Sequence record: NC_091964.1 | Strand: one strand, 5' to 3' | DNA length: 64,000 nucleotides | Part shown: in pieces, positions 8,286-55,332 of the stretch | Layout of the letters: every line of letters starts with the position of its first letter | Position numbering within the stretch: position 1 is the first letter of the stretch | The notes under the pieces: model-generated | The model's input: the letters and a program-made list of their open reading frames with translations, nothing else | Databases searched by the model: none | What the model was told of the DNA's origin: nothing | Made by a program: the position numbers and the translations under genes

Positions 8286-8322
8286 AAAAGAGAAGGGCCA
8301 AACGGCCCTTCTCTTTTTTTTT
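8286..8322. terminator. Bidirectional intrinsic terminator
   Basis: AAAAGAGAAGGGCC-AAAC-GGCCCTTCTCTTTT plus T-tract, between convergent genes. Confidence 0.85.
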
Positions 8323-8971
8323 ATATCTCGAACAAAATAGGCCTAAGGGACCAGTAGGTACTTGTAGTGCCCCTCGATCTCATTGCAGCAAATCGTTGAT
8401 CGCTAGAGCCGCGGAGAAGTACGTTACTAGAGTTATAGTTAGCGCAGAAAGTAGAATTAGCCTGCCTGGCAGTGATAAATCCTAAGTCCCCTGGCTGGTA
8501 CTTCCATTGATCACCATACGCCATTCCCTCTGGAGATTTCCCCGACATGTCAATAATAGGGTTGAATAGTAGGTTAAACTCGCAGAAGTTAAAGACAGCG
8601 CCTGCCGGATAAATAGTCGAGTCAGGAACAGAACCCATTTGATCTAAGGGTAACGTATTCGCTCCACGTATTAAGCGAGCAAAATAGTTCTTTCCATTGA
8701 ACGTAATATTCTTGCCCGCTACAAGCCCTGCTTGGAGTAAGGTGTTGAAAGAGATATTTACCGCAATCCCGGTCTTCGGGACAATACAGTTCTTACCATC
8801 CTCCTGACTATAATAGCGAAGGAAAGCTTGACCTGTAATTATTGTCGAACCAACTGGTAGTCCCAGAGCCTGATATAAATCAGAGTAGTTACCTATATTA
8901 CCTTCACCCAGATACTTGTACGGTCCATTGGACGAGTTGTTCTTTGTAGATCCACCCAAGGCCTCTAACAT
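8321..8971 (-). CDS. Tail-associated protein, phiKZ gp131-like family
   Basis: N-terminus MLEALGG; YFARLIRG, EFNLLF, C-terminal WSLRPILFEI; apparent paralog of 54643..55332. Confidence 0.6.
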   Translation of the reverse strand: MLEALGGSTKNNSSNGPYKYLGEGNIGNYSDLYQALGLPVGSTIITGQAFLRYYSQEDGKNCIVPKTGIAVNISFNTLLQAGLVAGKNITFNGKNYFARLIRGANTLPLDQMGSVPDSTIYPAGAVFNFCEFNLLFNPIIDMSGKSPEGMAYGDQWKYQPGDLGFITARQANSTFCANYNSSNVLLRGSSDQRFAAMRSRGTTSTYWSLRPILFEI

Positions 8972-8988
8972 TTAACCCCCTCTGAGCT

Positions 8989-9600
8989 TTAGGTCCCTTT
9001 ACTCAATTCAATATAAGCAGTCTGAAGGGATTTGATTTCCTCTTGCAATTCCCCAATGATTTTATCTTTAGCCAGCAACTGAGCATACGCGGTTGTGCGG
9101 TCTTTAATCGCTGCTTGGCGGTTGGCTTCCAGGTTCTCTGCGTTCTCGACAGACATAGCCTGAGCTTCACCGATAGAGTCGACAAAGATCTCCGGCTCAA
9201 CGCCCAGAACATCAGACAGTACTTCAGCGACTTTCTGCTTAACAAAGCTGAAATCGTAGTCGGTACGGAAAGGACCGAGCTGACCTGAGATAACGTAGTT
9301 AGCATAAGCAGGGATAGACTGCGACGGGAAACTCTGAATGTAGGTGCTCGGTACGAAGAGCATCTCGCCATCTTCAGAGTAGAGGATAACCAGCGTAGCC
9401 TTCGCTTTGTAGTCGTCCTCGTAATTAGTTTGCGTAAGGCCGAGAGGTGCGTAGTAGTCAGCAAAGATATTAACTGAACTACTTACCAACTCCATGAACT
9501 TACGCAGACCGATGACCGTATAGAGTTTGGTCGGTTCTGCCTTGAAAGGCGCCTTAAGTACAAAGCGCCCCTTCGTATCCAAAGGAGGTGCAATGGCCAT
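8989..9600 (-). CDS. Conserved phiKZ-like virion protein
   Basis: PP..KGRF.LK.PF N-terminus and C-terminal coiled coil, in the structural cluster. Confidence 0.55.
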   Translation of the reverse strand: MAIAPPLDTKGRFVLKAPFKAEPTKLYTVIGLRKFMELVSSSVNIFADYYAPLGLTQTNYEDDYKAKATLVILYSEDGEMLFVPSTYIQSFPSQSIPAYANYVISGQLGPFRTDYDFSFVKQKVAEVLSDVLGVEPEIFVDSIGEAQAMSVENAENLEANRQAAIKDRTTAYAQLLAKDKIIGELQEEIKSLQTAYIELSKGT

Positions 9601-9610
9601 CCTTTACTCC

Positions 9611-10264
9611 TTAAATATAAGTAAGCTTGAAATAGTTAATAAGGCCAACAAAGTAGTTACTTGGCGTATTTGTCCCTCTGAACAAGTTCCAAACACCCCC
9701 GCCGTTACCTATCTCTATTTCAGCAGTGCTGTGAGCCGCGATAGGCCTGGTTGAGTTCCCTCGGTAGACATTCATCCAGAACCCCGATCCGTAGGTTCGA
9801 GTAATCTCTACCTTTGTCCATTCCGGGCTATACTGCACAGGCGCATAAAGGCGATCGTACTGAGTACCCGGACCCATTAAGAAAGCCTGGAAGAAACGAT
9901 CAGGGAACTGACCAATATTCAACCCAATCCCAGAAGTGATGCCTTGGTTATAATCCCCAGTCCCTCCCAGGTTAGTAGACCCAGTCGTTTTTGGGAAAAC
10001 CTCGTACTCGATAACAAAGCTTTTCTTACTGAGGTAAAGTAGCTCAGTAATAGGCGCGGTAAAGTAAACGTCCCCGCGTGCATCGAAGACGTTTCCCTTT
10101 ACGTTATCCATGACCACTCCGGAGGCAGGATTCGCCCCGAAGCGTTGCCATAGATTCCCGCATTTATCACTGACCTCTTTACTCCCGATCGCAAGATCCT
10201 TCCAGTCGATATTAATCCCTGGACGGCGAGCTCTAGCGGACACTGGCAGTAAAGACTCGATCAT
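9611..10264 (-). CDS. ConA/LamG-like lectin-fold tail accessory protein (start revised to MIESLL)
   Basis: ATG at 10264 lies 1 nt after the upstream TAA. FVIEYEVF...WTKVEITR...YFVGLINYFKL LamG-like strands. Confidence 0.6.
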   Translation of the reverse strand: MIESLLPVSARARRPGINIDWKDLAIGSKEVSDKCGNLWQRFGANPASGVVMDNVKGNVFDARGDVYFTAPITELLYLSKKSFVIEYEVFPKTTGSTNLGGTGDYNQGITSGIGLNIGQFPDRFFQAFLMGPGTQYDRLYAPVQYSPEWTKVEITRTYGSGFWMNVYRGNSTRPIAAHSTAEIEIGNGGGVWNLFRGTNTPSNYFVGLINYFKLTYI

Positions 10265-10265
10265 A

Positions 10266-11585
10266 TTAGCTACCCAATGCGAAGTCTTTCTTAATTGGAC
10301 AGAGGAATTGGATGTTGTCGACAGTTGTTGTGAGGTAGTACACCCCATCACGAACCGTACGAGTCATATCCTGCGGGATGATCGTGTGTTCAGTTGCTTC
10401 CTCGGCAGCCTTGAAAAGTCCATTTAACTGAAGAATCATCATTTGCGTTGACGGCGGAAGTTTCCCGAAATCCGGTGCCTTGGTATCGATATCACAATAG
10501 CTCGGCCACTGCGTATCAAACGCGGTAGTAGCGCCGTAGTTATCTTTGTTCCCGCACGCAATGAAGAGCAGACACTGGTAGTTAGCGGACGAGATCGTCA
10601 CGTTATCAGCCAGGAAGTCTTTCTCGTACCCTTTGCAATACTTCTGCGCGTACTGTTGCACGACCCTGTCGCGAATAGTAGAGGAGTAGATGCCACTACC
10701 CGTTCCTTTATTAGGGAGAGCAATTCTATCCCAGAGAGGCACGACGTAGAATTCGGTAGGTACGAACAAGTCAGGGTAAATCTTGGACCAGATGTCTTCC
10801 CCATGCACGGACAGTGACAAGATAAGGTTACGTAAGTATTCCTTGATCAAGTCAATGTTTTTACTCTGCGGACCATGGCAGAGAACCGAGAACGGTGAAT
10901 CGTAGTAGATGTCGGCATTATCTTTATCATGCCAACGGAAATTCATCGTAACGAGGAATGTCTGAGGATGACCGATTGCTGCCTGATCCACTCTGGTGTT
11001 GTGATTAACAATCGTGATTGCTTTCAGCAAGGCTAAAGCTGCATCGCGATCCCCGGCCAATTTATCGATATCGATGTTGTTAATTGGCAGGATTCCGGTA
11101 TAGTCGTTATTCGGGTAGTATTTCTCTAACGAATCGTGACCGTACCAGATAAAGAGATTGTTGTCTTCACCTGCATTAGTTGCACTGAGCGTAACATAGG
11201 TGGGGAAGAGGTACGTGTCCTTGTAGATGATCTCACCGACGTCGGTGATATTGGCTACTGCACCAAACTCCGCGCGCAATGCCTGGAGCATGGTAGGGAT
11301 ATCTTTGGGAATATTCCCGCTGATAGAACGTAAATAAAGCCATTCTGTCATTTTAAGCAGAAGGTCTTGATACGTCAGCCCGACACTAACCAAATTGTCA
11401 TCGCGGGAGGAACTCAGCGAAATGAGCTGAGAGTTGGGATAGTCTTTTAAACTGTACCGCTCAATCTCATTGCTGTAGGTGTAGTTTTCTTTGGTCATTT
11501 CGCCAATTGTAGCAACCTGCCCTGGCGACTTGTTCCTGAAGTTTGGAATCTCACCGAACCCGTACAATGCGTAACTCATGTGCAT
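10266..11585 (-). CDS. Conserved virion structural protein (phiKZ gp157-like)
   Basis: Y.L.GF..I..F.N..PG.VA.IGE N-terminal motif; 439 aa; position next to the RNase H block. Confidence 0.6.
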   Translation of the reverse strand: MHMSYALYGFGEIPNFRNKSPGQVATIGEMTKENYTYSNEIERYSLKDYPNSQLISLSSSRDDNLVSVGLTYQDLLLKMTEWLYLRSISGNIPKDIPTMLQALRAEFGAVANITDVGEIIYKDTYLFPTYVTLSATNAGEDNNLFIWYGHDSLEKYYPNNDYTGILPINNIDIDKLAGDRDAALALLKAITIVNHNTRVDQAAIGHPQTFLVTMNFRWHDKDNADIYYDSPFSVLCHGPQSKNIDLIKEYLRNLILSLSVHGEDIWSKIYPDLFVPTEFYVVPLWDRIALPNKGTGSGIYSSTIRDRVVQQYAQKYCKGYEKDFLADNVTISSANYQCLLFIACGNKDNYGATTAFDTQWPSYCDIDTKAPDFGKLPPSTQMMILQLNGLFKAAEEATEHTIIPQDMTRTVRDGVYYLTTTVDNIQFLCPIKKDFALGS

Positions 11586-11633
11586 TCTCCGTTATAATTA
11601 CAATTAATCTTAAAAAAATATCAGGAGGCAGAC

Positions 11634-12158
11634 GTGGTTAGCGTCCTCTTACGCCTCATCCCATACCTCTATTCTTTCATCAAAGAAATGAATAGGAAAG
11701 ACATGGAGAGGGGGACTACACAAAAGCAGAGAGCGCGTTACCGTACGGTAATCGCTATTCTACTCTCAGCAATCTTGATGTTAGGTATTTTCTCTGGGTA
11801 CTGGATTCATCGCAAGATGAACGAAATTCACGTTCTAGAGAATACCCTCGCACGAGAAAAAGAGAGGGGATATGTAGACATGACCAAGTTCGTCCCAAGG
11901 ACGGATCACGAACAGATGGTCAGTCTCCTTGCTCATAAAATGAACCGTGCTGAGTTCATAGATGAGCTTGCTCTGGAAGAGTTAGAAGCGATATGTAAGG
12001 CGGATCCCAAGGATTGTAACCCTGGGACTCACCGTACCATAAAGCTATTAAAAGACTTTCTCGAAGTATCAGATCGCGAAAAAGACAATTTGGGGCAACT
12101 CAATGAGTCGATGGAAAAAGAGAAAGCGGAATTGCGTGAAACCTTAGATAAAAAATAA
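11634..12158 (+). CDS. Membrane protein with coiled coil (possible i-spanin-like)
   Basis: SD aggagg with GTG start; TM segment VIAILLSAILMLGIFSGYWI, then a helical coiled coil with a Cys pair. Confidence 0.5.
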   Translation: MVSVLLRLIPYLYSFIKEMNRKDMERGTTQKQRARYRTVIAILLSAILMLGIFSGYWIHRKMNEIHVLENTLAREKERGYVDMTKFVPRTDHEQMVSLLAHKMNRAEFIDELALEELEAICKADPKDCNPGTHRTIKLLKDFLEVSDREKDNLGQLNESMEKEKAELRETLDKK

Positions 12159-12209
12159 CTCACTGACTACTTCCTTTGATACTAAATAATTTATTAAAGG
12201 AAGTGCGAA

Positions 12210-13778
12210 ATGTCACTTGAGTTAGATTTAGAAGATGACGCGCAATACGGTCTTGTGCTCTACACCGATGGTGGGAAAGACACAAAGTCGAGTGCCGCCG
12301 GGTGGGGGGTTCATGGATACCTCTACCCGGTTTTCGATAAAAAAGAAAAGTTTAAGAAAGACAAGGGTGCGTTTGGGCAGTACGGTTATGTCAATGGACA
12401 GAAGACCGATAAGACCTTTAAACCAGGAGAGCGTCTGGTAGAGGCTGGTAAGCTGTATAAACTGATTGTCAACGAGCCAAACTCGATGCCTTCAGAACCT
12501 GTCACACCGACCCACTTCTTCGACTTTTACGAAGGTATCCCGGACGCCACTATATCCGTTGTTGAAATAAAAGCAATGGAGGAGGCGCTCCGCCTTATAG
12601 CATCGATACCGCAACTGAAACAAGCGGTTATCGTCGCTGATTCTGAGTACGTCTGTCTGACGCTGACAGAGTACATCTTTGCGTGGGTCAAAAACAATTG
12701 GGCACGTAAGAATAATCCGAAACCAATTGAGCATGTCGAACGTTGGAAGAGCATTTGGGAAAATCTAAATGCTATTCGTGATAAAGGCGTTACGGTGCGT
12801 ATCGGGTGGACTCGATCGCATGTGGGTGAACCTGGGAACGAAGCTGCTGATTATAACGCGACAAAAGGAAAGGTCGCCGTTCTCAATAGTTTAGAGGGGA
12901 AGAGAGATGTCATAGTCGCGAAAGACTACGGGCAGAAAAAGAAATTAAGCAACCGTCTTCTCGAACAACGTTGGTGGTACGGAATTAACAACGAGCTCAC
13001 AACCAGCTATGACGACTTTGCAGGTAAATACGTCTACTTCTTTGGGAATCACGGTAAGGCAGAAGAGGAAGACGACCTGATTGGCAAATACACCTCGACA
13101 GCTAAATTAGCTATCATGGTTAGCCCGGAGAAAGAACCTGTCCTCGAAATGCTTCATGATTATCTCTTCGATCGTTTCTACGAGGAGGTCGGGCTTGTCA
13201 CGCTCGGGTATCTGGAGCATATCACTAATACGGAGCGATACGCCCAGTTGGCGAAAGAGGGTAAGAGCGTTCTGTACCCGAAAGGTCGGGACAATTGCAT
13301 CCAAACGCCAGATGGCGTACCGGTAATGAAAGAGCTGCGTCCTACCTTCCATGGACTTCGTCTGCTGGATAGTTTGAAATGGCATCTGGGATTACTCAAG
13401 CGCTTCGTCGACGGCGATGGAAGTGTTACCGTTACTGACATTACTGATATCGTCTACGATACCGTGGATAATGGTAAGAAGGTTACGGTTAAGACTGCTG
13501 ATTGTATCAACCCGCCGAACAAGACAGTATCGCTTGAAGTCGGTTATAGCTGTATGGGCAATGTAGGGACGAAGAAGATACCGTTCAAGATGGGGTTGGA
13601 TATCCCCCTCCGTAACACCTTGAACGCCATTGCCGATGAGTCCGTTCGTGTCTACGCTATCACGTGGCAGCGTAGTAGAAATGAATTCCGTTATGGCACC
13701 ATCGTAAAATGTGGAGAAGACTTACTGTTAACTTGTTCGCTTTCGTCGAACCTCGTTACACTAGTGAGTTTGAAATGA
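12210..13778 (+). CDS. rnhA: Ribonuclease HI-like protein with C-terminal extension (phiKZ gp155-like)
   Basis: LYTDGG, VEIKA, VADSEYV, WTRSHVGEPGNEAAD catalytic motifs. Confidence 0.85.
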   Translation: MSLELDLEDDAQYGLVLYTDGGKDTKSSAAGWGVHGYLYPVFDKKEKFKKDKGAFGQYGYVNGQKTDKTFKPGERLVEAGKLYKLIVNEPNSMPSEPVTPTHFFDFYEGIPDATISVVEIKAMEEALRLIASIPQLKQAVIVADSEYVCLTLTEYIFAWVKNNWARKNNPKPIEHVERWKSIWENLNAIRDKGVTVRIGWTRSHVGEPGNEAADYNATKGKVAVLNSLEGKRDVIVAKDYGQKKKLSNRLLEQRWWYGINNELTTSYDDFAGKYVYFFGNHGKAEEEDDLIGKYTSTAKLAIMVSPEKEPVLEMLHDYLFDRFYEEVGLVTLGYLEHITNTERYAQLAKEGKSVLYPKGRDNCIQTPDGVPVMKELRPTFHGLRLLDSLKWHLGLLKRFVDGDGSVTVTDITDIVYDTVDNGKKVTVKTADCINPPNKTVSLEVGYSCMGNVGTKKIPFKMGLDIPLRNTLNAIADESVRVYAITWQRSRNEFRYGTIVKCGEDLLLTCSLSSNLVTLVSLK

Positions 13779-14134
13779 TAAATTTCATTTTAGAACAACT
13801 GAGTGGACGGTATATCAATGATAAAGGTAAGAGGATGTTGCTGTTGACATCCCTCTATGTCCTGATCATGCATATGCACGGCAAAGAGCCTAACTTGGAG
13901 AAGTTTAACCAAGAGCTCAAGCTGGTCCACGACATCAAGGGGGTTAATCTGGCGACGCTTATCTACCCAGTTATCTGGAGCGATAGGTTTAAGCATTTTG
14001 TCCAGAAAGCTCCTTCGGAGAAAGTGATCAGATATGTCAGCCTTCGTCTACCGAAATGGCTCGACTATCGAGAGTCGGACGATTATTCATTAGAATCAGA
14101 CCTGAAGACTTTAGAAGGCATTCTGCCGAAATAA
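13775..14134 (+). CDS. Hypothetical protein (start revised, ATGA overlap)
   Basis: ATG overlaps the RNase H stop; followed by a terminator. Confidence 0.6.
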   Translation: MINFILEQLSGRYINDKGKRMLLLTSLYVLIMHMHGKEPNLEKFNQELKLVHDIKGVNLATLIYPVIWSDRFKHFVQKAPSEKVIRYVSLRLPKWLDYRESDDYSLESDLKTLEGILPK

Positions 14135-14139
14135 AAGAA

Positions 14140-14167
14140 GAGGAGAGAGGCATTAGCCTCTCTCCTC
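14140..14167. terminator. Terminator between convergent genes
   Basis: GAGGAGAGAGGC-ATTA-GCCTCTCTCCTC, 12-bp stem. Confidence 0.8.
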
Positions 14168-14178
14168 TCTTTGTGTCT

Positions 14179-15033: not shown

Positions 15034-15113
15034 AGCGTTAACCTTTTCAGATGACTTGACATAAAATTAGAGGTATCTGCCTCTTTAGATGAGAAACTTT
15101 TTGGAGAAAGAAC

Positions 15114-16550: not shown

Positions 16551-16564
16551 CCGAGAAAAAATAA

Positions 16565-16852
16565 ATGGTCCGTAATGATGCACGTTTTCATCTGGTGATG
16601 TTAATCTCCGAGTTTTCCCATGCACGGGCTAATGCATTCGAGGATATGTTTGAGCACGCTGAAAAACAGCGTAGCTCTGACCGAGCCGAGATGCAGGAGA
16701 TTAACGAGTTCTTCGGGCGCGAATTGCGCCCTTTCACTCGTGTCGGCGCAGATGTAGCTTTAAGTCTTGAAACTGAAAAGGGAATTGATTATTGGTTGCG
16801 CGAATTCAGAAGGAAGATGATGAACTATATCCTGAAGGACTGGAGGCCGTAA
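16565..16852 (+). CDS. Hypothetical protein
   Basis: 95-aa ORF tightly packed in the operon. Confidence 0.6.
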   Translation: MVRNDARFHLVMLISEFSHARANAFEDMFEHAEKQRSSDRAEMQEINEFFGRELRPFTRVGADVALSLETEKGIDYWLREFRRKMMNYILKDWRP

Positions 16853-16853
16853 T

Positions 16854-17910: not shown

Positions 17911-17912
17911 CG

Positions 17913-45643: not shown

Positions 45644-45649
45644 TCACTC

Positions 45650-45684: not shown

Positions 45685-45700
45685 GTTTCTAATTTGGTTT

Positions 45701-45725: not shown

Positions 45726-45764
45726 AACCTATTCAATTTTACAATCAATCTACTAGAGGTACTC

Positions 45765-46397: not shown

Positions 46398-46401
46398 TAC
46401 A

Positions 46402-46968
46402 ATGAGACTTGATACTTTTAAAACCAACGAAGTTAAAGATGCTGCTGCTCTGGCCGAACTGCTGAAAAGCAAAGGTATTGAGAACGAAGAACGTGAGCCT
46501 CAATCACTGGTTATCCTTACCGGTAATAAAAAGAAAGATAATAAGAAAGAGGACCCGAGTCTGCGCACTCAGATGCTGCGTTGGTATAACGCTAATCCCG
46601 ATATGCTGGCGGTTGCCGTAAACAACCTGCTCCGCATCACCCGTGAAAAAGCTGTAGAGGGTGAGCTGATTAACTACGCGATCGAATTCCGTAGCCAGGA
46701 TACCACGCTGTCCAAACAAGCAGAAAACCAGGAAGTCATCGGCATCACTCTGCTCGAAGATTTCCTGTTTGTAAACTACTCCGTGTTCGAAGCACTGGCG
46801 CGCATCAGTCGCCCAGCTGAAGCTAAAGTCCGTCACCTGATCACTGAAGATCTGGAGAAGCTGGACATTTACAAGCTGACTAACGCGCTGGTTGTTGAAA
46901 GCCGTAAAGATAAATCTCCGTACAAACGTTACGACTACGTTGATTTCCTGGACGTGCTTACCTGTTAA
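46402..46968 (+). CDS. Hypothetical protein (start revised)
   Basis: SD gagga before ATG 46402. Confidence 0.65.
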   Translation: MRLDTFKTNEVKDAAALAELLKSKGIENEEREPQSLVILTGNKKKDNKKEDPSLRTQMLRWYNANPDMLAVAVNNLLRITREKAVEGELINYAIEFRSQDTTLSKQAENQEVIGITLLEDFLFVNYSVFEALARISRPAEAKVRHLITEDLEKLDIYKLTNALVVESRKDKSPYKRYDYVDFLDVLTC

Positions 46969-46977
46969 GATGTTCTT

Positions 46978-47023
46978 GCCCGTGCCCATTACAGATTTCC
47001 CCTGGGATAACGCGGGCTTTTTT
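46978..47023 (+). terminator. Long-loop terminator-like hairpin
   Basis: GCCCGTG/CGCGGGC outer stem, inner CCCA/TGGG stem, then TTTTTT. Confidence 0.55.
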
Positions 47024-47053
47024 ATTCTACCGTTAACAAGGAAATAATTAGAA

Positions 47054-47653
47054 ATGAGCTCTATTACAAATAACGTTGTTAATACCGTAACACTGACCGA
47101 TGAAAAATCCTTCAGTGCTGAATTTATCTTCTCTAATAAAGAGACTGCGCTGCACGGCGTACATACTGCGCTGCTAACCATTCTGGCCGGTGCGGCGGTG
47201 GAGCAGGAGTTCAATCGCTCCAATATCTTCTCCTGTAAATACAACGACGTTTTCACCGGGAACGTTACCATCGGTACTCGCGGAGATCGCATCATTATTT
47301 CTGATGGGAATAGCGAGTTTGATATCAGCTGCTACGAAGCTCAGACGTACATCCTGGAACCATTCGGGTTGTTCATGCCGGACTTCGTTCCAATGATCAA
47401 TGAACATCTCTTCGGTTGTGAAGGCATAACCTGCTGGATGATTGAAGAACTTGGCGGGTATTACAGTGGCCAGGATTCTGATCTCTGGATCCTTACCAGT
47501 CAGGGTATGTTGATTGCTACTGAAGAACTACGCAAGGAAGATATGTCCACGTACCTTTCTCCGGTAGCTGTATACGACCTTAATCACCAATGGACAGAAG
47601 AGGAGGTAAAGAATAGCGAACAAATCAAAGCGATCATTGCAGCATCCTATTAA
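47054..47653 (+). CDS. Hypothetical protein
   Basis: SD aagga; 199 aa. Confidence 0.65.
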   Translation: MSSITNNVVNTVTLTDEKSFSAEFIFSNKETALHGVHTALLTILAGAAVEQEFNRSNIFSCKYNDVFTGNVTIGTRGDRIIISDGNSEFDISCYEAQTYILEPFGLFMPDFVPMINEHLFGCEGITCWMIEELGGYYSGQDSDLWILTSQGMLIATEELRKEDMSTYLSPVAVYDLNHQWTEEEVKNSEQIKAIIAASY

Positions 47654-47670
47654 TTTTTAGGTAAGCCTAC

Positions 47671-47806
47671 TATAGTTTGACAACCCACTCCATTTAACCC
47701 CTTGTGCTCGGTCAATGGAACATTCCAGGAAAATAAGACACTCCGGGTTGTCAGCTATAAGAGGTGGGGGATGGAAATCCCCCGTACCTCCCACCTTTTA
47801 TTTTTT
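47671..47806 (+). ncRNA. Candidate structured small RNA ending in a terminator
   Basis: About 15-bp closing stem 47671-47686/47745-47759, internal TCCATT/AATGGA stem, a GGAA-loop hairpin and a U-tract. Confidence 0.4.
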
Positions 47807-47821
47807 GTTCGGAAGAAAAAG

Positions 47822-48103
47822 ATGATTTACATGAACAAGCCGGGTGAATACATTATCGACCGCGATCATTGCGCTATGCGCGTGGTGGATGGTCGACTGG
47901 AGATTGCTACTAAGGATCGTACTTTCTCTTTCGCCAAAGGTGATTCTATTAACCCGCGCGTCATTGTACTTTCCGTACAGGGCGAGCGTATCGTCAACCT
48001 GCAATTTGTACCTGTCGCTGATCAGACTAAATCTGTCTACATGCCTGATTACGATACCGCCGAGAAGTTCTTAACGTTTGTTGAGCACTTCATTAACAAC
48101 TAA
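47822..48103 (+). CDS. Small hypothetical protein (start revised)
   Basis: ATG 47822 after GGAAG. The ORF-track 5' extension runs through the structured intergenic region. Confidence 0.6.
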   Translation: MIYMNKPGEYIIDRDHCAMRVVDGRLEIATKDRTFSFAKGDSINPRVIVLSVQGERIVNLQFVPVADQTKSVYMPDYDTAEKFLTFVEHFINN

Positions 48104-48119
48104 GTAAGGATAAGAATAA

Positions 48120-49019
48120 GTGGAACTTAAACTGATCGATAAAGAAGAATGTGCTTCTCGCGCCAGTGAGATTTTGGGCATGGCGATGTTCCGCCCGGCT
48201 CATCGCGTCGTTAACTTCTTCGATAAGAAGAACGGTCGCATTTACCTTACGGAGTTTCAGGACTTCATGGCTCCGAAGAAAGAAGACTTCAATATCCAAA
48301 CCCAGAAGAGCCTGGCTATTGAGATCGACGCTCCGGATATTGCAGCGCTGCTACCGGATGGAATCGATCTGGAGTTTGCTATTGTTTACTGCGTTCAGCC
48401 GACTCTGTATTTCGTTCAGGTGAAAGATCGCTTCTTCGCCGTGGGACAGCGCCTTAATCATCAGCGTATGTCTGAAGAACGCGCAGATGGCCTCGAGCTC
48501 ATTGAAGAAGTTGGGCTTGATGGCGAATTCCGTTTTGTGTTCCTGCCGCGTGTCGGTATGTGTATCCGCGGTCTTTCTCGTTATGATTACCGTGGTCGCC
48601 GTCACGACTTTGAATTCGCTGCCGACGAAGAGGAAATGAATCGCGTCAGTTTCAGCGGTCTTTTCCATCTGGTTCGCTCTACTGGTATTCCGGTACTGGA
48701 AGAGTTTGGCGAAGACGAAGACCTGGTCCGTAAATTCCTGGGCGCCACTGTTGGCGGCGATGAAGAATCCGCATGGCGTCTGCGTAACTGGACTTACCCT
48801 ACCTTCTGGGATGGCGATAACGAACCACGCCGTCGCTGGGGCAAAGGCGAACTGCTTCGTGGGCGTGGTCGTTTTGCTAACGCGGCGCGCGCCAAAGACG
48901 TATCATTTGAGGCAGGTTCTGGCAAAGTAACCGTCCAACAATTCGAGGGCGAAGATCGGGTGGAAACCTGCACGCCGTGGCTCGAATATTCATTCGCAGA
49001 AACTTTTTACGGAAGCTAA
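48120..49019 (+). CDS. Hypothetical protein
   Basis: SD aagga with GTG start; 299 aa. Confidence 0.65.
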   Translation: MELKLIDKEECASRASEILGMAMFRPAHRVVNFFDKKNGRIYLTEFQDFMAPKKEDFNIQTQKSLAIEIDAPDIAALLPDGIDLEFAIVYCVQPTLYFVQVKDRFFAVGQRLNHQRMSEERADGLELIEEVGLDGEFRFVFLPRVGMCIRGLSRYDYRGRRHDFEFAADEEEMNRVSFSGLFHLVRSTGIPVLEEFGEDEDLVRKFLGATVGGDEESAWRLRNWTYPTFWDGDNEPRRRWGKGELLRGRGRFANAARAKDVSFEAGSGKVTVQQFEGEDRVETCTPWLEYSFAETFYGS

Positions 49020-49023
49020 AAAA

Positions 49024-49173
49024 ATGACACAGCCAAAAGATGATTTCGATATCGATGCACTCGCTAACGTTGACTTCGACGCCGTTGATAAACGCGTAGA
49101 AGAAATGCAAGCGGGCGGCGGAGAAGTGCTCGAGCCGAGCAATAAATGCGAATCAGGCGCATGTGAAATCTAA
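49024..49173 (+). CDS. 49-aa acidic miniprotein ending in the NrdA-tail-like motif CESGACEI (not in ORF track)
   Basis: MTQPKDDFDIDALANVDFDAVDKRVEEMQAGGGEVLEPSNKCESGACEI*; starts 4 nt after the upstream stop and fills the gap to a terminator. Confidence 0.75.
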   Translation: MTQPKDDFDIDALANVDFDAVDKRVEEMQAGGGEVLEPSNKCESGACEI

Positions 49174-49180
49174 AGTAATT

Positions 49181-49212
49181 GAGGGGTCTTCGGACCCCTC
49201 TTTTATTTTTTT
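49181..49212 (+). terminator. Intrinsic terminator (UUCG loop)
   Basis: GAGGGGTC-TTCG-GACCCCTC-TTTTATTTTTTT. Confidence 0.9.
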
Positions 49213-49271
49213 GTCTTTATCAGTTGGTGCTGCCGTTTCCTATGGACCGCAAACTAACCAAGGAACCTCCG

Positions 49272-50207
49272 ATGCTCGAGTCAATATTGTCAGCATTAAA
49301 CAAACCTTCAAGGCAACCGGGGGTAATAACTGGTGTGTATGAAGCACAGCCTATTATCACTTCGGGGGACTTTAACTTCTATAACGTTGTAGGGGCGTCA
49401 GTAAGGGTAGGAGATTATCTCTACATTGCACCTGGTAACTATTCTACCGGTGGCAGTTACGTTCTTACAAATAACTTCTACCGCTACAATCTTAAGACCT
49501 TTAAGCTAGAGCAGCTAAGTGCTGCACCTAAAGCAGTCTCCTTTGCGTCGCTGTGTCATGACAACGGAAAGATATACATGTATGCAGGCATACCCGCAAG
49601 CGGCAGTAACAGTCCGCTTTGTATATATGACATTGCATCAGGGACATGGACTAACACTGGGCTAGCTAACCAGGCCCGAAAAAACTGCCGGACCTTTGTA
49701 TACAACGGACGGTTATACACCGTTGGCGGCGGTTTGTCTTCGGGTGGTGTTTATTACGATGTCATCTCGTACGACCTTAAAGATTATTCATCTATTAACC
49801 ACGGTAACTTCCTGAACCAAACAGGTGCTGGATATTTATTCAGCGAAGGCGCTGGGGTACTAATTGACTCGAAGTTCTATTTCTCGCGAGGCGGTAATAC
49901 GAGTAACGATGCGTGGATGGTATTTGATGCCGCTAAACTGACTCTCAAGGTACTGACAATGAACCCTGCGGCGGTGGCCGGGGGAGTACCGGTCTTGTTC
50001 GGCGACAAGATTGTCATGCGTAACGGTAACGCTTCTATCTCCCTGTACGAACCATCAACGGACAAGTGGACGGTCGTTCAGGCTGAAACTAACGCATCAT
50101 ACTCAGGTAATGGTCAGTCATTACATTTTGAGTACGATGGTTCTCTTTGGACTAAATACTTGCAAAGTAACGATAATACCGCAAGACGGTTCTGGCGAAT
50201 TAATTAA
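49272..50207 (+). CDS. Kelch-repeat beta-propeller protein (start revised to MLESILS)
   Basis: SD aagga; repeats such as GDYLYIAPG...YRYN, GKIYMYAG...IYDIASGTW, GRLYTVGGG...SYD. Confidence 0.8.
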   Translation: MLESILSALNKPSRQPGVITGVYEAQPIITSGDFNFYNVVGASVRVGDYLYIAPGNYSTGGSYVLTNNFYRYNLKTFKLEQLSAAPKAVSFASLCHDNGKIYMYAGIPASGSNSPLCIYDIASGTWTNTGLANQARKNCRTFVYNGRLYTVGGGLSSGGVYYDVISYDLKDYSSINHGNFLNQTGAGYLFSEGAGVLIDSKFYFSRGGNTSNDAWMVFDAAKLTLKVLTMNPAAVAGGVPVLFGDKIVMRNGNASISLYEPSTDKWTVVQAETNASYSGNGQSLHFEYDGSLWTKYLQSNDNTARRFWRIN

Positions 50208-50213
50208 TAGGGT

Positions 50214-50240
50214 AGGGGACTTCGGTCCTCTATTCTTTTT
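50214..50240 (+). terminator. Intrinsic terminator (UUCG loop)
   Basis: AGGGGAC-TTCG-GTCCTCT-ATTCTTTTT. Confidence 0.7.
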
Positions 50241-50275
50241 TGCTGTCTGGTTCTATTGGTATAGGAGGAACCAGC

Positions 50276-50629
50276 ATGTTATCTCGAAATGGTAAACACC
50301 AATATATCTGTCCTCATTGTCACAATCCGGACATTAAACAAATTCACATGTACGGCCAGAAGTCCATCGAATGTCGTAAGTGCAATCGTTGGTTCGCATG
50401 GTCGCTGAAAAAAGAAATTCCTGTCGGGGAGGAAAGAATGTTACGCGAAGATTATATGTTTACAGTGGGTATGGGCATAGGCATGTTACTGGCCATGTTG
50501 TTTATGGTAGTAATCTTTACCTTTACAACAACGAGGATTGAAGTCCTCCTCTGGACGGGGTCTATCGTAGCAGTATTCTCCGCAGTAATGTTGGTATGGG
50601 TCAATTTGAAATTCAGGGGGATCATTTAA
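50276..50629 (+). CDS. Zn-ribbon protein with two C-terminal TM helices (start revised)
   Basis: SD aggagg; CPHC...CRKC; two hydrophobic segments. Confidence 0.65.
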   Translation: MLSRNGKHQYICPHCHNPDIKQIHMYGQKSIECRKCNRWFAWSLKKEIPVGEERMLREDYMFTVGMGIGMLLAMLFMVVIFTFTTTRIEVLLWTGSIVAVFSAVMLVWVNLKFRGII

Positions 50630-51093
50630 TGCTACTACTCAATAAAGAACGTTTTCTCAAGCTCCCTGCCGGTATCTTCTATATTGAGGTTAGCAGCAGA
50701 GATTGCGACCCATCAACTGCGATGGTAAGTAACCCTATCAAAATTAAAGGCAATACCTTCGAGGATTTCGATGCCCAAGAAGGTAACCTTTCTTTCGCCC
50801 CTACGCCGGAAGATAACGGTCAGGAAGACTGGCCTTGTATTGGTAATGTATACGATGAAGAGAAAGGTTTCTCGGATTCGATGGATTTAACCTTAACTCT
50901 CACCCGTGGTGGTCTTATCGGAAGTGATGATTCTCGATTTATCGTCTTTGAACCTTCTGACATCAATACCATGAAGGAATGGATGGAAAAGGCATTTATT
51001 GCTATGGCTGCTTGGTTAAAAGAGCAGCCCGCTAAATACCCTGAATTAATGAAGGCTGTCGATAACACCTACAACGATAAGGATTTTAATTAA
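50629..51093 (+). CDS. Hypothetical protein (start revised, TAATG coupling)
   Basis: Stop/start overlap at both ends. Confidence 0.65.
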   Translation: MLLLNKERFLKLPAGIFYIEVSSRDCDPSTAMVSNPIKIKGNTFEDFDAQEGNLSFAPTPEDNGQEDWPCIGNVYDEEKGFSDSMDLTLTLTRGGLIGSDDSRFIVFEPSDINTMKEWMEKAFIAMAAWLKEQPAKYPELMKAVDNTYNDKDFN

Positions 51094-52067
51094 TGGAAGT
51101 ATCTAAAGTAAAACCTATGCAGGCCGATATCATCTACTACCACGGTGATTGTGTTGATGGTATGGCAGCTGCCTGGGTAGCGTGGCGATGGGCGCGGAAA
51201 CACCGTCCGGACAGCCTTGTGCATCTTTTAGAGGCTCATTACGGGAAGCCGTTGGACATCCCGGAAAACTGGTATAATACCGAGGACGATGTAGTTATGC
51301 ACGTCCTGGACTTCAGTATCCCGGTGGAAGACCTGAAAGAAGTCTGTAAGAAGTGTAATGTCAAGACACTTTACTATATCGATCATCATCCTACCGGTAA
51401 GAGCCAGATTGAAGCTGCTGTTGCAGAAGCGTCAGACTGGGGCGTTGATATGGCGGCATGGTTCGATAATGGTCCCGGTAAAAGCGGCGCGTCGCTGGCG
51501 TGGGATAACTACTTCCCTAACGAGCCTGTTCCGTTATCGATTTTACGTGTTGCTGATCGCGATACCTGGACCTTTAAGTATCTTGATTCCAAGACCTTCC
51601 ATGCGTACGCTGCGCTGTTCTTAAAAGATGAAACGCGTTGGGATAGCGTGTTTGAGAACGATAAGTTTAACGAGAACATTGTTAAGGGTTCGGCTATCCG
51701 TTTGCAGATCGAATCTATCGTTAACAAATATACTCAGCCTGAGTTACATCAGAACGTTGTTTACGGCGAATATAAGGGCGTCGCGGTTAACGTCGGTCGT
51801 GAGTTCGTATCCGAGGTGTGTAATAACATCCTGGAGTCTAATCCGCAGATCGATTTCGTTCTGGGTTATCAAATCCATCCGATGCACGTCAAGTTCGATT
51901 TCCGTGCAAGGCAAAGTGACGACATCAATGTTGGGACGATTGCTAAGTACTGGGGCGGGGGCGGACATCCGGCAGCTGCGGGGCTGTTAATTCCTAAAAC
52001 CCATTGCTATTCTTCGGGTACTCGCCTACAGGACTTCTTGAAGAAAGTTAAACTAAATCTTTTCTGA
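51093..52067 (+). CDS. DHH/DHHA1 family phosphoesterase
   Basis: YHGDCVDG, LDFS, IDHH, SGASLAW, DRDTW, GGGGHPAAAG. Confidence 0.88.
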   Translation: MEVSKVKPMQADIIYYHGDCVDGMAAAWVAWRWARKHRPDSLVHLLEAHYGKPLDIPENWYNTEDDVVMHVLDFSIPVEDLKEVCKKCNVKTLYYIDHHPTGKSQIEAAVAEASDWGVDMAAWFDNGPGKSGASLAWDNYFPNEPVPLSILRVADRDTWTFKYLDSKTFHAYAALFLKDETRWDSVFENDKFNENIVKGSAIRLQIESIVNKYTQPELHQNVVYGEYKGVAVNVGREFVSEVCNNILESNPQIDFVLGYQIHPMHVKFDFRARQSDDINVGTIAKYWGGGGHPAAAGLLIPKTHCYSSGTRLQDFLKKVKLNLF

Positions 52068-52071
52068 CAGC

Positions 52072-52104
52072 AAAAGAGAGGGCCGTTTGGCCCTCTTTTT
52101 TTTT
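52072..52104 (+). terminator. Intrinsic terminator
   Basis: GAGGGCC-GTTT-GGCCCTC with flanking A- and T-tracts. Confidence 0.85.
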
Positions 52105-52145
52105 ATCTATGTAGTACATAACGACGACCTGCCCAAAGGTGACGT

Positions 52146-52352
52146 ATGATTGAAAATCTTCTTGGCTCTGGTAAAGCGACTGTTAATGGATTATTAGTAT
52201 CTACAAATGGTGCGGCTATATTTAGACCGGTATACTCTGGGCTCATACCGTTAACAACGGGTGCTGCCCTTTTCACTACTCCTTATTGCGGTTTAATACC
52301 TTTAGTTACAGGCGCCGCGATCTTTAAGAAAGGAACAGTAAATGGCAATTGA
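52146..52352 (+). CDS. 68-aa protein with MIENLL N-terminus and 17-aa repeats
   Basis: SD aaggtg; GAA[IL]F x3 and GLIPL x2 with a 17-aa period. Confidence 0.6.
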   Translation: MIENLLGSGKATVNGLLVSTNGAAIFRPVYSGLIPLTTGAALFTTPYCGLIPLVTGAAIFKKGTVNGN

Positions 52353-53454
52353 TTACATGCAAGGCTGGCAGGGAGTGGACCCTAAGCAAGTGGCCGTTGG
52401 CGGTTCTGCTAGCGTAGAAACATGGTTGAATAATCTGACTACTCCTCGAGGGACACTTAAGTCCATTCGAGATTTAACGATATACAGTTTATCCAACGGG
52501 GGATTACGTCATAATTTCGAGAACGGCGCTGATGGTCAGGTGCAGTTAGCGACTTACGCAACTTCGGGCTACCCTTATACAGTAGCAGCACGTTTCTTCG
52601 TGGCGGCCCAAGAAACTGGGATATCTACTTTCGGTGCGAGACTCAAGAGAAACGGAAACACAAGTGCTCAATGTGTAAGAATAATCGGTGCGCTCAGTAC
52701 TAGCGCAGGTAATACAGGATCTGCTTACATAGGCGGAACAAACAGCCTGTTGGAGGTTTATGTAGAGGTATTGATTAACTGGGACGCTAAGACCTTTAGT
52801 ATCTATCTTAATGATACGTTGCAGACTACGATGAATTTCACGTCCCTTACTGAAATTTATATCGGATCGTTGGCAAGCTATCCCCTTTATCCGCCAGGTA
52901 ACACGTCTGGTAGTACATCTTGGGCTTTCTCTGCTAGCAACGGAAAACAGAACATTAGCGACATCTACGCTAACTACGATGCTCCTGGCGATGAGAACCC
53001 GATAGGTAGACTTGGTCCTATTATTATTAGACCAATCCCCATTGTCGATGTTTCGATTGCAAACGGTTCATTCTCCGGCACGTCCAAAGAAGAATGGATG
53101 GCAAATAAATCTGTCTATAACACCAATCCTAATAAAGGCATCCGTACGGCAGGAGATGGGAAGAAAACCATTGCTACGTTCGATGATGTTACTAAGTATA
53201 GGAAAGAAGGCGAAGAGATAGTCGGGTTCGGTATTACCCAGACGTTCACTAACTTCGATCCTGTCAAGCCTACCAAATTCGTCGGTAACGTTTCAGGTCC
53301 TAGCGGTACTGATTACTCAGGTAAATTAGAGAGGCTATCTGGTGGTTCTTCTTATTCATCTCCATTATGGTTCACTTTCGCAGTGAGTGGAATGAGTGAA
53401 GAAGACCTGAAAGGGCCGCGTTTCTATATGGATATGTTGCGGGCTGCTGATTAA
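52342..53454 (+). CDS. Putative virion lectin-like (jelly-roll) protein
   Basis: SD aggaa; Ser/Thr/Gly-rich beta protein; YVEVLINW...ISDIY..D...GRLGP pattern. Confidence 0.55.
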   Translation: MAIDYMQGWQGVDPKQVAVGGSASVETWLNNLTTPRGTLKSIRDLTIYSLSNGGLRHNFENGADGQVQLATYATSGYPYTVAARFFVAAQETGISTFGARLKRNGNTSAQCVRIIGALSTSAGNTGSAYIGGTNSLLEVYVEVLINWDAKTFSIYLNDTLQTTMNFTSLTEIYIGSLASYPLYPPGNTSGSTSWAFSASNGKQNISDIYANYDAPGDENPIGRLGPIIIRPIPIVDVSIANGSFSGTSKEEWMANKSVYNTNPNKGIRTAGDGKKTIATFDDVTKYRKEGEEIVGFGITQTFTNFDPVKPTKFVGNVSGPSGTDYSGKLERLSGGSSYSSPLWFTFAVSGMSEEDLKGPRFYMDMLRAAD

Positions 53455-53460
53455 CGATGC

Positions 53461-53496
53461 AAAGAGAGGGCCCGAAGGCCCTCTTCTTTTTTTTTT
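53461..53496. terminator. Terminator between convergent genes
   Basis: GAGGGCC-CGAA-GGCCCTC plus long T-tract. Confidence 0.85.
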
Positions 53497-53499
53497 GCT

Positions 53500-53898
53500 T
53501 TATGACTGTTCGGTAGCGGGAAGATCCAATACCGTCATCTTCTGCGGTTCATCCTGGCGACGCTCGTAATGAGACTTACCGCCAATACGAACAGCTAAGT
53601 ACATGAGCTGTGCACGCAGCTTCGAAATACGAAGACGTTTAAGGTTCTTCAGGAACAACTGATCAGCTCGCTTGCGAGGAAGCTCTCCGCCGTAACAGTA
53701 GTCGTGTACTAACGCTGCCGGTAGCGTACGACCATAACGAGGGAAAATCCAACGCGCCCACCAGGGCGAGCTTACTCCGTCAGATAAGAAGTCTTTAGGT
53801 ACGATGATTTCCGGGGTAACAAAATCCGTGAGTAGTTGTACCTTATTAGGGAAACTAAGGAACTTCACTTCTGGATCGGGTAACTTATAAGTTCTCAT
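53500..53898 (-). CDS. DUF1353 family protein
   Basis: VPKDFLSDGVSSP...AALVHDYCY...RKRADQLF...MYLAVRIGG. Confidence 0.8.
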   Translation of the reverse strand: MRTYKLPDPEVKFLSFPNKVQLLTDFVTPEIIVPKDFLSDGVSSPWWARWIFPRYGRTLPAALVHDYCYGGELPRKRADQLFLKNLKRLRISKLRAQLMYLAVRIGGKSHYERRQDEPQKMTVLDLPATEQS

Positions 53899-53931
53899 GT
53901 CTAAATCCTTCGCTGTCTGATTAATTCATTG

Positions 53932-54633
53932 TTATACTACTAAACTCCCTTTATTCGGCGTGAAGTTAGCGTTATATTTAGCGCCAATCCAAATAGCAAA
54001 TTCCGGGATGTAGACGTTGTATGCGTTTCCTCCTATTAATAGCTTAGTGATTGATTTTAATACGTACTGGGAAACATCCACTGAAGATGCGCCGTACGAT
54101 GAACCGGTTCCAGCAGCTAGCGGTTGTAACTGCCCATCGTAATAGATTCGCCCTTTACCGTTATCACGGACAACGGCTACATGGTGCCATCCACCTGAGA
54201 AAGTAGTGCGGTTAATTGGCGTACTCCAGTTAGCCCCGAGTATAGCAGCGTACAAAGAGAACTGAAGTCTATTACCAAAACCACTATCGGCAATACGAAT
54301 AGGAAATGTTCTTCCATTGTCATATTCGATAGTTAAGAAGGTGGTATAGCCAGCAGGACCTGGATCGACATAGACCCAGAACTCAACGGTGAAGTTTTCC
54401 GTTTCCATAAAGGAGAGTGCAGCCATTGGGGTTATCGTAATGGCTTTATTGTAAAGCGACAACCCCTTTGCATAACCTGCTGACTTATCACCGTAGTTAA
54501 CGACGTCGGTCGATAGATTACTACTTACGGTTTGAGTTGACCCAGTACTGACGCCTTTATTGTAGTCGAAGCCTAATACAGGCTTATCGCTAGGCGGTAG
54601 TGGCTTTCTACCTGTTAACATTGCCTCAAGCAT
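53932..54633 (-). CDS. LamG/ConA-like lectin tail accessory protein
   Basis: MLEAML N-terminus; NFTVEFWVY, GWHHVAVVR.NG..RIYYDG, YIPEFAIW..AKY. Confidence 0.8.
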   Translation of the reverse strand: MLEAMLTGRKPLPPSDKPVLGFDYNKGVSTGSTQTVSSNLSTDVVNYGDKSAGYAKGLSLYNKAITITPMAALSFMETENFTVEFWVYVDPGPAGYTTFLTIEYDNGRTFPIRIADSGFGNRLQFSLYAAILGANWSTPINRTTFSGGWHHVAVVRDNGKGRIYYDGQLQPLAAGTGSSYGASSVDVSQYVLKSITKLLIGGNAYNVYIPEFAIWIGAKYNANFTPNKGSLVV

Positions 54634-54642
54634 ATAACCTAC

Positions 54643-55332
54643 CTATGGAATAAGTTCCAGGACGGGTCGCCAGCCGACGTTGGGATTAGCGGACGTACGT
54701 CCCAAGGACGAAGGTGTTTTGATAGACTCATAACCGATACAGTTAGCATTCCCTGTTGCCGTAGCGGGTACTTGTGCTGTCATACAGTGATGCCCTGGCG
54801 TACCGGTGTTGATGGTTGCCCATTTGGTTCCAGCTTCTGTATCGCTTGCTGCTGTGTTTCTATCGATCGTCCACATGAGTCGCGCCCATTCGGATTCGGG
54901 CATATCAGCAGCAGTATAGGTATCTTTTAATGATATCCGTGGTAAACGCACGAGGTAAGTATATCCGTTTACAACGAGCTTTTTATTCTGCAATACGTTC
55001 GCCCCATCCGGGTATCCACCGAAATCATCTCGGCCGTATACAAGTCCTTTTTGGTACATCGTGGAACGAGCAATGCCATCTACTAATGTAGTGGTTGGGA
55101 TATATAAAACTTTCCCGTCTAGGGCAAACTTCATCCAGGTAGGTGTTGCTACCGTCCAGCCCGTCAGTGCTTTAAGGTCGTTTGCAGTGGCTACTTCCGT
55201 TGCGTCTAGGGTTCCAAAGAAACCCGACTCTTTACCGTCCGTTCTTTTAAAGAACTTGTCTGTAGTTTGTGGTCCAGGCCCGAGAGCTAACCCGCTACCT
55301 AAAGATTTCTTACTGGTAAGTATCTCTAGCAC
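54643..55332 (-). CDS. Tail-associated protein, phiKZ gp131-like family (start revised to GTG, MLEILT)
   Basis: SD gaggag before GTG 55332; WMKFALDGKVLYIP, YLVRLPR, SEWARLM, GWRPVLELIP. Confidence 0.7.
   Translation of the reverse strand: MLEILTSKKSLGSGLALGPGPQTTDKFFKRTDGKESGFFGTLDATEVATANDLKALTGWTVATPTWMKFALDGKVLYIPTTTLVDGIARSTMYQKGLVYGRDDFGGYPDGANVLQNKKLVVNGYTYLVRLPRISLKDTYTAADMPESEWARLMWTIDRNTAASDTEAGTKWATINTGTPGHHCMTAQVPATATGNANCIGYESIKTPSSLGRTSANPNVGWRPVLELIP

Follow-up and report, generated by a model that had tools for sequence, protein, structure and literature searches.

Why do proteins with different bodies, encoded at scattered places and on both strands of a jumbo phage genome, begin with nearly the same few residues? 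This question is raised by a stretch of 64,000 nucleotides (nt) from sequence record NC_091964.1, which is referred to below as the window. An earlier examination of its letters alone (the sequence-only reading) had noticed six open reading frames (ORFs) that open with Met, Leu or Ile, Glu, any residue and a further hydrophobic residue, each followed by a linker and then a body of its own. It had proposed that this start, here called the tag, docks interchangeable receptor-binding domains on the phage tail or baseplate. All six ORFs were found at their coordinates and start as claimed, and the search for tag starts through the whole genome and through other phages, which had been suggested as a check, revealed more carriers in both.

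The window corresponds to positions 62001..126000 of MN334766.1, the genome of Serratia phage PCH45 (window bases 48000-56000 match 110000-118000 of that record with 100% identity). PCH45 is a jumbo phage of 212.8 kb that forms a nucleus and belongs to the Chimalliviridae, and its receptors are flagella and lipopolysaccharide. Genes are numbered here by their order in the PCH45 record. This numbering agrees with that of a Tn-seq/proteomics preprint on PCH45 (10.64898/2025.12.19.695335) for the capsid protein gp33, the protease gp81, the virion RNA polymerase gp87/88, the fibre gp111 and the tail protein gp141.

A protein-level tag on ten proteins of PCH45

The tag is a module that exists at the protein level on proteins with unrelated bodies, and it occurs far more often than chance would allow. 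In five of the six window ORFs (with starts at 8971−, 10264−, 49272+, 54633− and 55332−), the first codon of the tag is the GenBank start of the coding sequence (CDS). As these five starts were chosen by the depositors, they are not due to free start-picking. When the remaining genome was scanned in six frames, four further annotated genes with a tag start emerged, namely gp4 (record position 2666+), gp8 (4339+), gp10 (6239−) and gp34 (34531+), so that the earlier count of six carriers was too low and PCH45 has ten. Another start, that of gp52 (record position 53999+), fits the strict pattern only; its following columns do not match, it gave no family hit, and it is probably a chance occurrence.

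The pattern scored was M-[LI]-E-x-[LIM] at a gene start, for which the probability calculated from composition is 0.00147. Nine to ten of the 225 CDS in PCH45 begin this way compared to 0.33 expected (Poisson p between 1e-10 and 3e-12). When annotated starts were set against every other in-frame start codon that had 40 or more codons downstream, the odds ratio was 20.6 (p 4e-9). Within the window alone (64 CDS), five annotated tag starts were seen against 0.09 expected at the same per-gene probability. The codons used for the tag vary among its copies (TTA, CTT, CTC or CTA for Leu; ATC or ATT for Ile; GAA or GAG for Glu). Since synonymous codons vary freely, selection has acted on the peptide rather than on the DNA or mRNA.

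These data bear on the simplest alternative, that the tag has no function of its own, being a translation-initiation context, an artefact of start choice, or the relic of an ancestral leader spread by recombination. All carriers do have ordinary Shine-Dalgarno sites immediately upstream, and short motifs are easily over-read. However, the residues stay while their codons change, the starts are the depositors' own with a p value around 1e-10, and the tag is kept across phage families and in orthologues whose bodies have only 14-48% identity. In the two alignments of such orthologues (A2 and A3), M1 and E3 are among the only five invariant columns in each. This alternative is therefore extremely improbable.

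To describe the anatomy of the tag, 76 tagged sequences from PCH45, its relatives and database representatives were compiled, which had been selected on columns 2, 3 and 5 only. Column 2 is Leu in 52, Phe in 16, Ile in seven and Met in one of them, and column 4 is most often Leu (22), Met (13), Ser (10) or Ala (9). Column 6, which was not used in the selection, is Leu in 54 of the 76. Columns 7-9 are mainly Gly, Ser, Ala or Thr, columns 9-12 are rich in Lys, Arg and Gly, and the proteins resembling phiKZ gp083 have a Gly-Pro-Gly-type motif after the tag at a median position of 20. The tag may be summarized as Met, then a large hydrophobic residue, Glu at position 3, any residue at position 4, another hydrophobic one and, in most cases, Leu, followed by small and then basic residues and by a Gly/Ser/Pro linker of 8-20 residues. 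Tag strings were also looked for in the literature, and no paper with them turned up in the collection searched, which is itself incomplete.

Bodies behind the tag and carriers in other phages

What does the tag precede? When residues 1-12 were removed, BLASTP paired only gp34 with gp66, gp108 with gp4 and gp109 with gp64. When the profile of the gp083-like family (66 sequences) was compared to that of the LamG set, only the first 27 or so columns could be aligned. Judged from sequence, the bodies belong to at least five unrelated families: the phiKZ-gp083-N-like proteins, two LamG groups, Kelch proteins, phrog_6409 and a repeat peptide. Together with the enrichment and the conservation in orthologues across genera, this bears out the proposal that the tag is a module common to different bodies. 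Tagged bodies match families of "virion structural proteins", and no untagged paralogue of any of them was found in PCH45.

Two window proteins share the gp083-N-like body. gp64 (QFP93150.1; 8321..8971, minus strand; tag codons 1-7 at 8951..8971, minus strand) has 216 residues, in which the tag and a short Gly/Ser/Asn linker precede a body assigned to phrog_1062/16120. It aligns with gp109 and relatives and shares an operon with baseplate genes. gp109 (QFP93138.1; 54643..55332, minus strand; tag codons at 55312..55332, minus strand) has 229 residues, with a linker and the residues GPGP between tag and body. Its start codon is GTG, read as Met, with the Shine-Dalgarno sequence GAGGAGGAG upstream. 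The sequence-only reading had labelled both bodies gp131-like. They belong instead to the family of phiKZ gp083, EL gp155 and PhiPA3 gp080-083, and the PhiPA3 annotations of their homologues name phiKZ gp083 and EL gp155. In local tblastn searches, only gp60 (1821..3551, plus strand) matched phiKZ gp131-135, and gp64 and gp109 had no phiKZ match. gp60 is the true fibre gene of the phiKZ gp131/133/134/135 family in the window; it ends in a Peptidase_S74 intramolecular-chaperone domain and carries no tag, and the phiKZ gp131-135 proteins themselves have other N-termini, without the tag. The gp64/gp109 family has no Pfam entry, and tblastn matches to the gp109 body were found in 121 phage records.

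LamG-type bodies are found in gp108, gp4, gp34, gp66 and gp8. gp108 (QFP93136.1; 53932..54633, minus strand; tag codons at 54613..54633, minus strand; 233 residues) joins the tag through a Pro-rich linker to a Laminin_G_3 domain scored by Pfam at 54.3 bits against a cut-off of 27.6. The Laminin_G_3 match of gp34 (27.7 against a gathering score of 27.6) lies just above the limit, and that family also includes gp4. gp66 (QFP93149.1; 9611..10264, minus strand; tag codons at 10244..10264, minus strand; 217 residues) consists of the tag, a linker and a body of phrog_6011, a "virion structural protein" family through which gp8 joins as well; its start lies 1 nt past the stop codon of gp67. As gp66 has no direct Pfam hit, its LamG membership is indirect, resting on phrog_6011 and on its paralogy with the tagged gp34, which is seen even without the tag (BLASTP 6e-23). 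Of the two LamG/ConA bodies that had been called, that of gp108 is thus confirmed directly by Pfam and that of gp66 indirectly.

The Kelch propeller called earlier also held up; its gene lies at 49272..50207 (plus strand). This gene, gp102 (QFP93108.1; 311 residues; tag codons at 49272..49292, plus strand), encodes the tag, a linker and a beta-propeller body, which reached 41.5 against 25.3 for Kelch_6 and just the gathering score (50 against 50) for Kelch_KLHDC2_KLHL20_DRC7. When compared to a PCH45 relative in a Logan metagenome contig (L027, 7322-8257), 215 of its 936 nt differ (23%), whereas neighbouring genes differ by 3-6% and the first seven residues are identical. Such fast divergence of the body is typical of receptor-binding proteins. 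The body of gp10, outside the window, is phrog_6409.

The sixth window ORF, at 52146..52352 (plus strand; tag codons at 52146..52166, plus strand), is absent from the GenBank annotation. It encodes 68 residues, consisting of the tag, a Gly/Ser linker and two copies of a hydrophobic, Gly/Ala-rich repeat. It is preceded by the Shine-Dalgarno sequence AAAGGTGA, occupies an otherwise empty gap of 274 nt and overlaps the start of gp106 by 11 nt. We accept it as a real gene because two relatives, a contig of assembly GCA_015253905.1 (L026) and L027, have it called at the corresponding position, with only synonymous changes (6 and 7 nt differences, respectively). No homologue outside PCH45 was found in the phage collection searched. 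The first of these relatives, AAXBXN010000010.1 (179,610 bp), is itself a PCH45-like jumbo phage genome within an NCBI assembly, with 3-6% nt differences from PCH45 over five syntenic genes (window positions of about 49-55 kb).

Does the tag occur beyond PCH45 and its closest relatives? PhiEaH1 has two tagged LamG proteins. Further carriers were found in pEa_SNUABM_37, in Deimos-Minion (gp166, two genes downstream of the tail fibre gp168) and in the rV5-like phages PcCB7V and SPLA5a. In phiKZ, gp083 and gp298 are the sole two carriers in the genome, and their first seven residues are identical. Two uncultured jumbo-phage contigs have four and three tagged genes per 20 kb, with bodies that include Gly_rich_2, LamG, phrog_6409 and phrog_6011. 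In PhiPA3 (NC_028999.1), gp080, gp081 and gp083 are tagged, and so is gp082 if it is read from an upstream start. The annotated start of gene 082 (168 residues; L012, 5905-6576) is probably too far downstream; from the upstream ATG, which has a GAGGAG site, the ORF has 223 residues and begins with the tag.

Searches with gp109 gave 713 hits at E <0.001, and a tag start was present in 48 of the 150 best representatives of this body family. Other members have quite different N-terminal modules on the same body, as would be expected if the mounting place of the body is set by the N-terminus. A search of IMG/VR with gp109 alone gave no relatives. A scan of IMG/VR with a degenerate DNA pattern for the tag gave 64 matches, mostly to an unrelated family with an internal peptide, and was uninformative on the tag. 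That family is widespread among viruses there (L029-L091) and has its tag-like peptide about 27 codons into an ORF that continues for 149 residues downstream. In Ralstonia phage RSL2 (AP014693.1; L013, 8001-8672), the homologue of gp108 is an intact LamG ORF of 223 residues that is annotated only as a 35-residue fragment, ORF002.

How the tag may act

If the tag is selected as a peptide, where do its carriers act? Tagged gp66 and gp64 are interleaved with gp67 (10266..11579, minus strand), the homologue of phiKZ gp157, and gp65 (8989..9600, minus strand), a DUF7194 protein homologous to phiKZ gp161, within a run at 8989..11579 on the minus strand. In phiKZ, the outer baseplate is braced by gp157, as a ring made up of dimers, and gp161 forms a baseplate "horn" (PMC13250141). 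Directly upstream of tagged gp109 and gp108 lie gp111 (56115..59585, minus strand), a tail fibre with collagen triple-helix repeats and a fibritin-like region that is homologous to phiKZ gp145/146, and gp110 (55396..56061, minus strand; DUF4376). gp67, gp65, gp111 and gp110 are all candidate attachment partners. The last gene of this operon is gp107 (53500..53898, minus strand), of the DUF1353 or "tail assembly chaperone" family. According to the preprint, the gp107-gp111 operon, with its two tagged genes gp108 and gp109, is essential and was detected by virion proteomics (10.64898/2025.12.19.695335). PCH45 homologues of phiKZ gp26, gp27, gp127, gp130 and gp139 also exist, and no tie between them and the tag was found; that of gp127 (record positions 46697..47566) is untagged.

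Further published data concern phiKZ gp298. This Kelch-domain protein is present at low abundance in virions and encoded away from the tail genes; it is dispensable on PAO1 and required for adsorption to two wild isolates (10.1101/2025.11.23.690004). The virion and adsorption character of the carriers is thus supported by their virion-protein families, by the baseplate and fibre operons, and by the published data on the operon and on gp298.

On balance, we favour the reading that the tag is an N-terminal virion-attachment peptide for accessory host-binding modules, and we regard it as somewhat more probable than its negation. The tag, joined to small bodies of lectin or propeller type, most of them single domains, whose genes are spread over the whole genome, would remain unstructured until it inserts, as a short helix or an added strand, into a conserved site. 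This site might be located at the baseplate periphery or in the tail-fibre network. Through insertion, accessory host-binding modules would be held on the particle with no covalent bond to a fibre, and bodies could undergo duplication, exchange and diversification behind a constant address. The docking itself, the sharing of one socket and the location of that socket are what we infer here.

Structures were predicted for two of the tagged proteins. The AlphaFold2 model of gp109 has a predicted local distance difference test score (pLDDT) of 93.8 and a predicted template modelling (TM) score of 0.90, with its body above 93 (about 94). In this model, residues 1-10 have a mean pLDDT of 53, residues 1-3 are below 50, and secondary structure is absent up to residue 25. 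The predicted body is a gp083-N-like alpha/beta domain. A Foldseek search of BFVD matched it to "virion structural proteins" of PhiEaH1, Rebecca, Phabio, Noxifer, EL, PhiPA3, RSL2 and 201phi2-1 (E down to 4e-19, TM up to 0.83). Against the PDB, the model gave only weak resemblances of the FGE/C-type-lectin type (TM 0.25-0.39, E >=0.008), which are not relied on. For gp108, which had a shallow alignment, the predicted pLDDT was 72, with residues 1-7 below 50; residues 2-6 form a short helix, and coil then extends to residue 17. In neither predicted fold is the tag packed on its own body.

The short helix predicted in gp108 may be read in another way. N-terminal helices or strands of tagged proteins could bundle with one another into homo- or hetero-oligomers, giving multivalent lectin clusters with no separate socket. 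Hydrophobic residues occupy positions 1, 2, 5 and 6 and frequently position 4, there are several tagged genes to a genome, and the base of the phiKZ fibre is described as a hetero-hexamer with a six-helix bundle, so that mixed bundles do exist in such baseplates (PMC13250141). However, the phiKZ bundle is assigned to gp131-family proteins, which lack the tag, and phiKZ has just two tagged proteins. In addition, a hydrophobic stretch of six residues is too short for a stable bundle by itself, and attachment to the particle would still have to be explained. We consider self-association unlikely.

The composition of the tag and the neighbours of gp108 and gp109 suggest a different possibility, that the tag is recognised by an assembly chaperone or in quality control (as would be a latent N-degron that limits unassembled copies) and is not part of the final virion interface. 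Column 2 is Leu or Phe in 68 of the 76 sequences, and in the bacterial N-end rule these residues are recognised by ClpS once they are exposed. Chaperone-type genes (DUF1353 and DUF4376) flank gp108 and gp109. However, methionine aminopeptidase leaves Met in place before Leu, Phe, Ile or Met, so that no N-degron would be exposed by the usual route. In addition, an acidic residue adjoining the N-terminal residue weakens ClpS binding. Most tagged genes have no chaperone-type neighbour, and conservation across Pseudomonas, Serratia and Erwinia hosts argues for a phage-encoded partner. A signal of this kind is quite improbable.

Several points weigh against the attachment reading that we favour. 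Six or seven residues are very short for a stable interface, and the structure predictions, being of single chains, have no bearing on docking. No solved structure holds phiKZ gp083 or gp298, the gp083-like body family has no PDB relative, and no partner was found; when the PDB was searched by sequence, neither gp109 and gp34 nor two family profiles nor phiKZ gp083 and gp298 retrieved anything relevant. In the text of the preprint, virion presence in PCH45 is documented solely for the operon with gp108 and gp109 (10.64898/2025.12.19.695335). The rV5-like phages have a single tagged gene amid replication genes. The GenBank record of phiKZ (AF399011.1) labels gp083 a "structural head protein", a label of little weight because it is also attached to gp27, gp29, gp128 and gp157, which are now placed in the tail or baseplate. 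Finally, many members of the gp109 family have only a looser start, hydrophobic and then basic, and the LamG homologue of RSL2 has Ser in place of Glu3, so that Glu3 is typical and not universal.

Such looser starts and the variant without Glu, in the same families as the tag itself, might also be expected of a membrane- or surface-active amphipathic start, acting on the host envelope at adsorption or on an intracellular membrane at assembly. The hydrophobic hexapeptide followed by Lys/Arg-rich positions 9-12 would suit this activity. However, the tag has too few residues to cross a bilayer or to hold to one firmly, and a near-invariant Glu of the buried type is unusual in such helices. Moreover, its carriers belong to virion-protein families and lie in baseplate and fibre operons, and lectin-type bodies must be held on the particle in order to aid adsorption. 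A membrane role is very improbable.

The genes of this region are also punctuated by hairpins. The sequence-only reading had described several tagged genes as bounded by terminators, and this is right for several neighbours and for gp102, which has one hairpin at 49181-49200 and another at 50209-50236. In all, 25 strong G+C hairpins followed by T-runs were found in the intergenic gaps between 48.5 and 60 kb compared to 10.7 expected; besides the two around gp102, hairpin/T-run sites lie at 52072-52101, 53464-53485, 55367-55388 and 56089-56108, and also at 8286-8317. Two hairpins, one separating gp110 from gp109 and the other gp111 from gp110, lie within genes that the literature describes as a single operon.

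Known attachment systems and implications

Is attachment by so short a peptide known from any phage? In K1E, K1-5 and SP6-like podophages, conserved N-terminal peptides of 7 and 11 residues on two tailspikes are taken to attach these to the adaptor gp37, according to PMC6872550. As described there, the likeness lies in a very short, conserved N-terminal peptide in front of differing receptor-binding bodies that are exchangeable on one adaptor. The differences are that the peptides are others, that the phages are podophages with trimeric enzymatic spikes, and that the adaptor is known and has a T4gp10-like domain (PMC6872550). PCH45, unlike these phages, puts its tag on small LamG, Kelch and gp083-like bodies, with up to ten per genome. 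The Klebsiella phages of the KP32, KP34, Menlow and PhiK64-1 groups, as well as G7C with its gp63.1, similarly use a "conserved peptide" that docks on a T4gp10-like branching domain (PMC6872550, PMC13352976). Their logic of anchor, branching domain and docking peptide resembles what is proposed for PCH45; their peptide varies from one phage group to another and may have as few as seven residues, and each virion has several receptor-binding proteins. However, those peptides are conserved within one phage group, whereas the PCH45-type tag extends from Pseudomonas to Serratia and Erwinia chimalliviruses and to rV5-like phages, and the tagged PCH45 genes are scattered rather than placed beside a primary receptor-binding gene.

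PCH45 does share the hallmark of these systems, a short conserved N-terminal peptide on at least two host-recognition proteins with different bodies. Its tagged bodies are Laminin_G_3, Kelch, gp083-N-like and phrog_6409 domains and the 68-residue peptide, and not trimeric enzymatic beta-helix spikes. No T4gp10-like domain was found when nine proteins of the PCH45 tail, fibres and baseplate, together with neighbours, were scanned with Pfam, although these are only part of the virion proteins and Pfam may miss remote copies.

Two systems of the chimalliviruses themselves are related in principle. The phiKZ paralogues gp131, gp133, gp134 and gp135, at the outer baseplate, have in common an N-terminal part for attachment, whereas their distal parts differ; however, this common part is a folded domain, a few hundred residues long, in a hetero-hexamer, and these proteins are without the tag (PMC13250141). 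DUF7941, found in Goslar gp22/gp23 and relatives, is likewise an N-terminal module, one that occurs throughout chimalliviruses and is accompanied by carbohydrate-binding domains in some members, and it has been proposed to hang host-recognition domains from the peripheral baseplate (PMC13742148). It differs in being a globular domain with a linker that polymerises head to tail, whereas the tag has only 6-7 residues (PMC13742148). No Pfam match to DUF7941 was seen in the tagged proteins or the scanned neighbours, the presence of this family in the Pfam copy used being unchecked. In phage T4, a capsid targeting sequence serves as a short N-terminal address that directs unrelated internal proteins into the prohead and is removed by the prohead protease. 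It resembles the tag as a short address that brings unrelated proteins to one virion compartment; however, its destination is the prohead interior and it is cleaved, while carriers of the tag act in adsorption and show no sign of its removal.

What is known, then, is that short N-terminal peptides may attach exchangeable receptor-binding proteins. What differs here is the peptide, its spread across genera and into a second group of myoviruses, the small bodies and the scattered genes. A broader proposal, which we put forward tentatively and think less probable than not, is that the tag, of about seven residues, and its flexible linker form a portable virion address defined by sequence. This address would be used by all of the tagged proteins and would be sufficient for occupying one conserved socket on the chimallivirus baseplate/fibre network, shared with rV5-like myoviruses, and in any genome of this kind it would mark the complete accessory adsorption set, not listed before.

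The present work corrects several annotations: in PCH45 a gene had been missed, in PhiPA3 the start of one gene is probably set wrongly, and in RSL2 an intact ORF had gone unannotated. Its main interest lies in the outer baseplate and fibres, which are the least resolved part of the virion in nucleus-forming jumbo phages. In two recent chimallivirus atlases, the outer baseplate/fibre region is largely unmodelled, and neither mentions gp083 or gp298. phiKZ gp298 is a host-specific adsorption factor without a known mode of attachment or a tail-gene neighbourhood, and it follows the tag pattern of ten PCH45 proteins. As gp298 shares its seven-residue start with gp083 and its pattern with the PCH45 proteins, a shared attachment tag, if true, would offer a simple rule, based on sequence, by which candidate accessory adsorption proteins could be listed for any chimallivirus genome. 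It would also predict what to seek in unassigned density, and explain how a lectin-type repertoire can diversify with the core fibres untouched. If the tag is indeed a portable address, PCH45 would have ten accessory adsorption modules and phiKZ two, including the host-range factor gp298, and a role in host recognition would be explained for genes that are scattered among non-structural genes.

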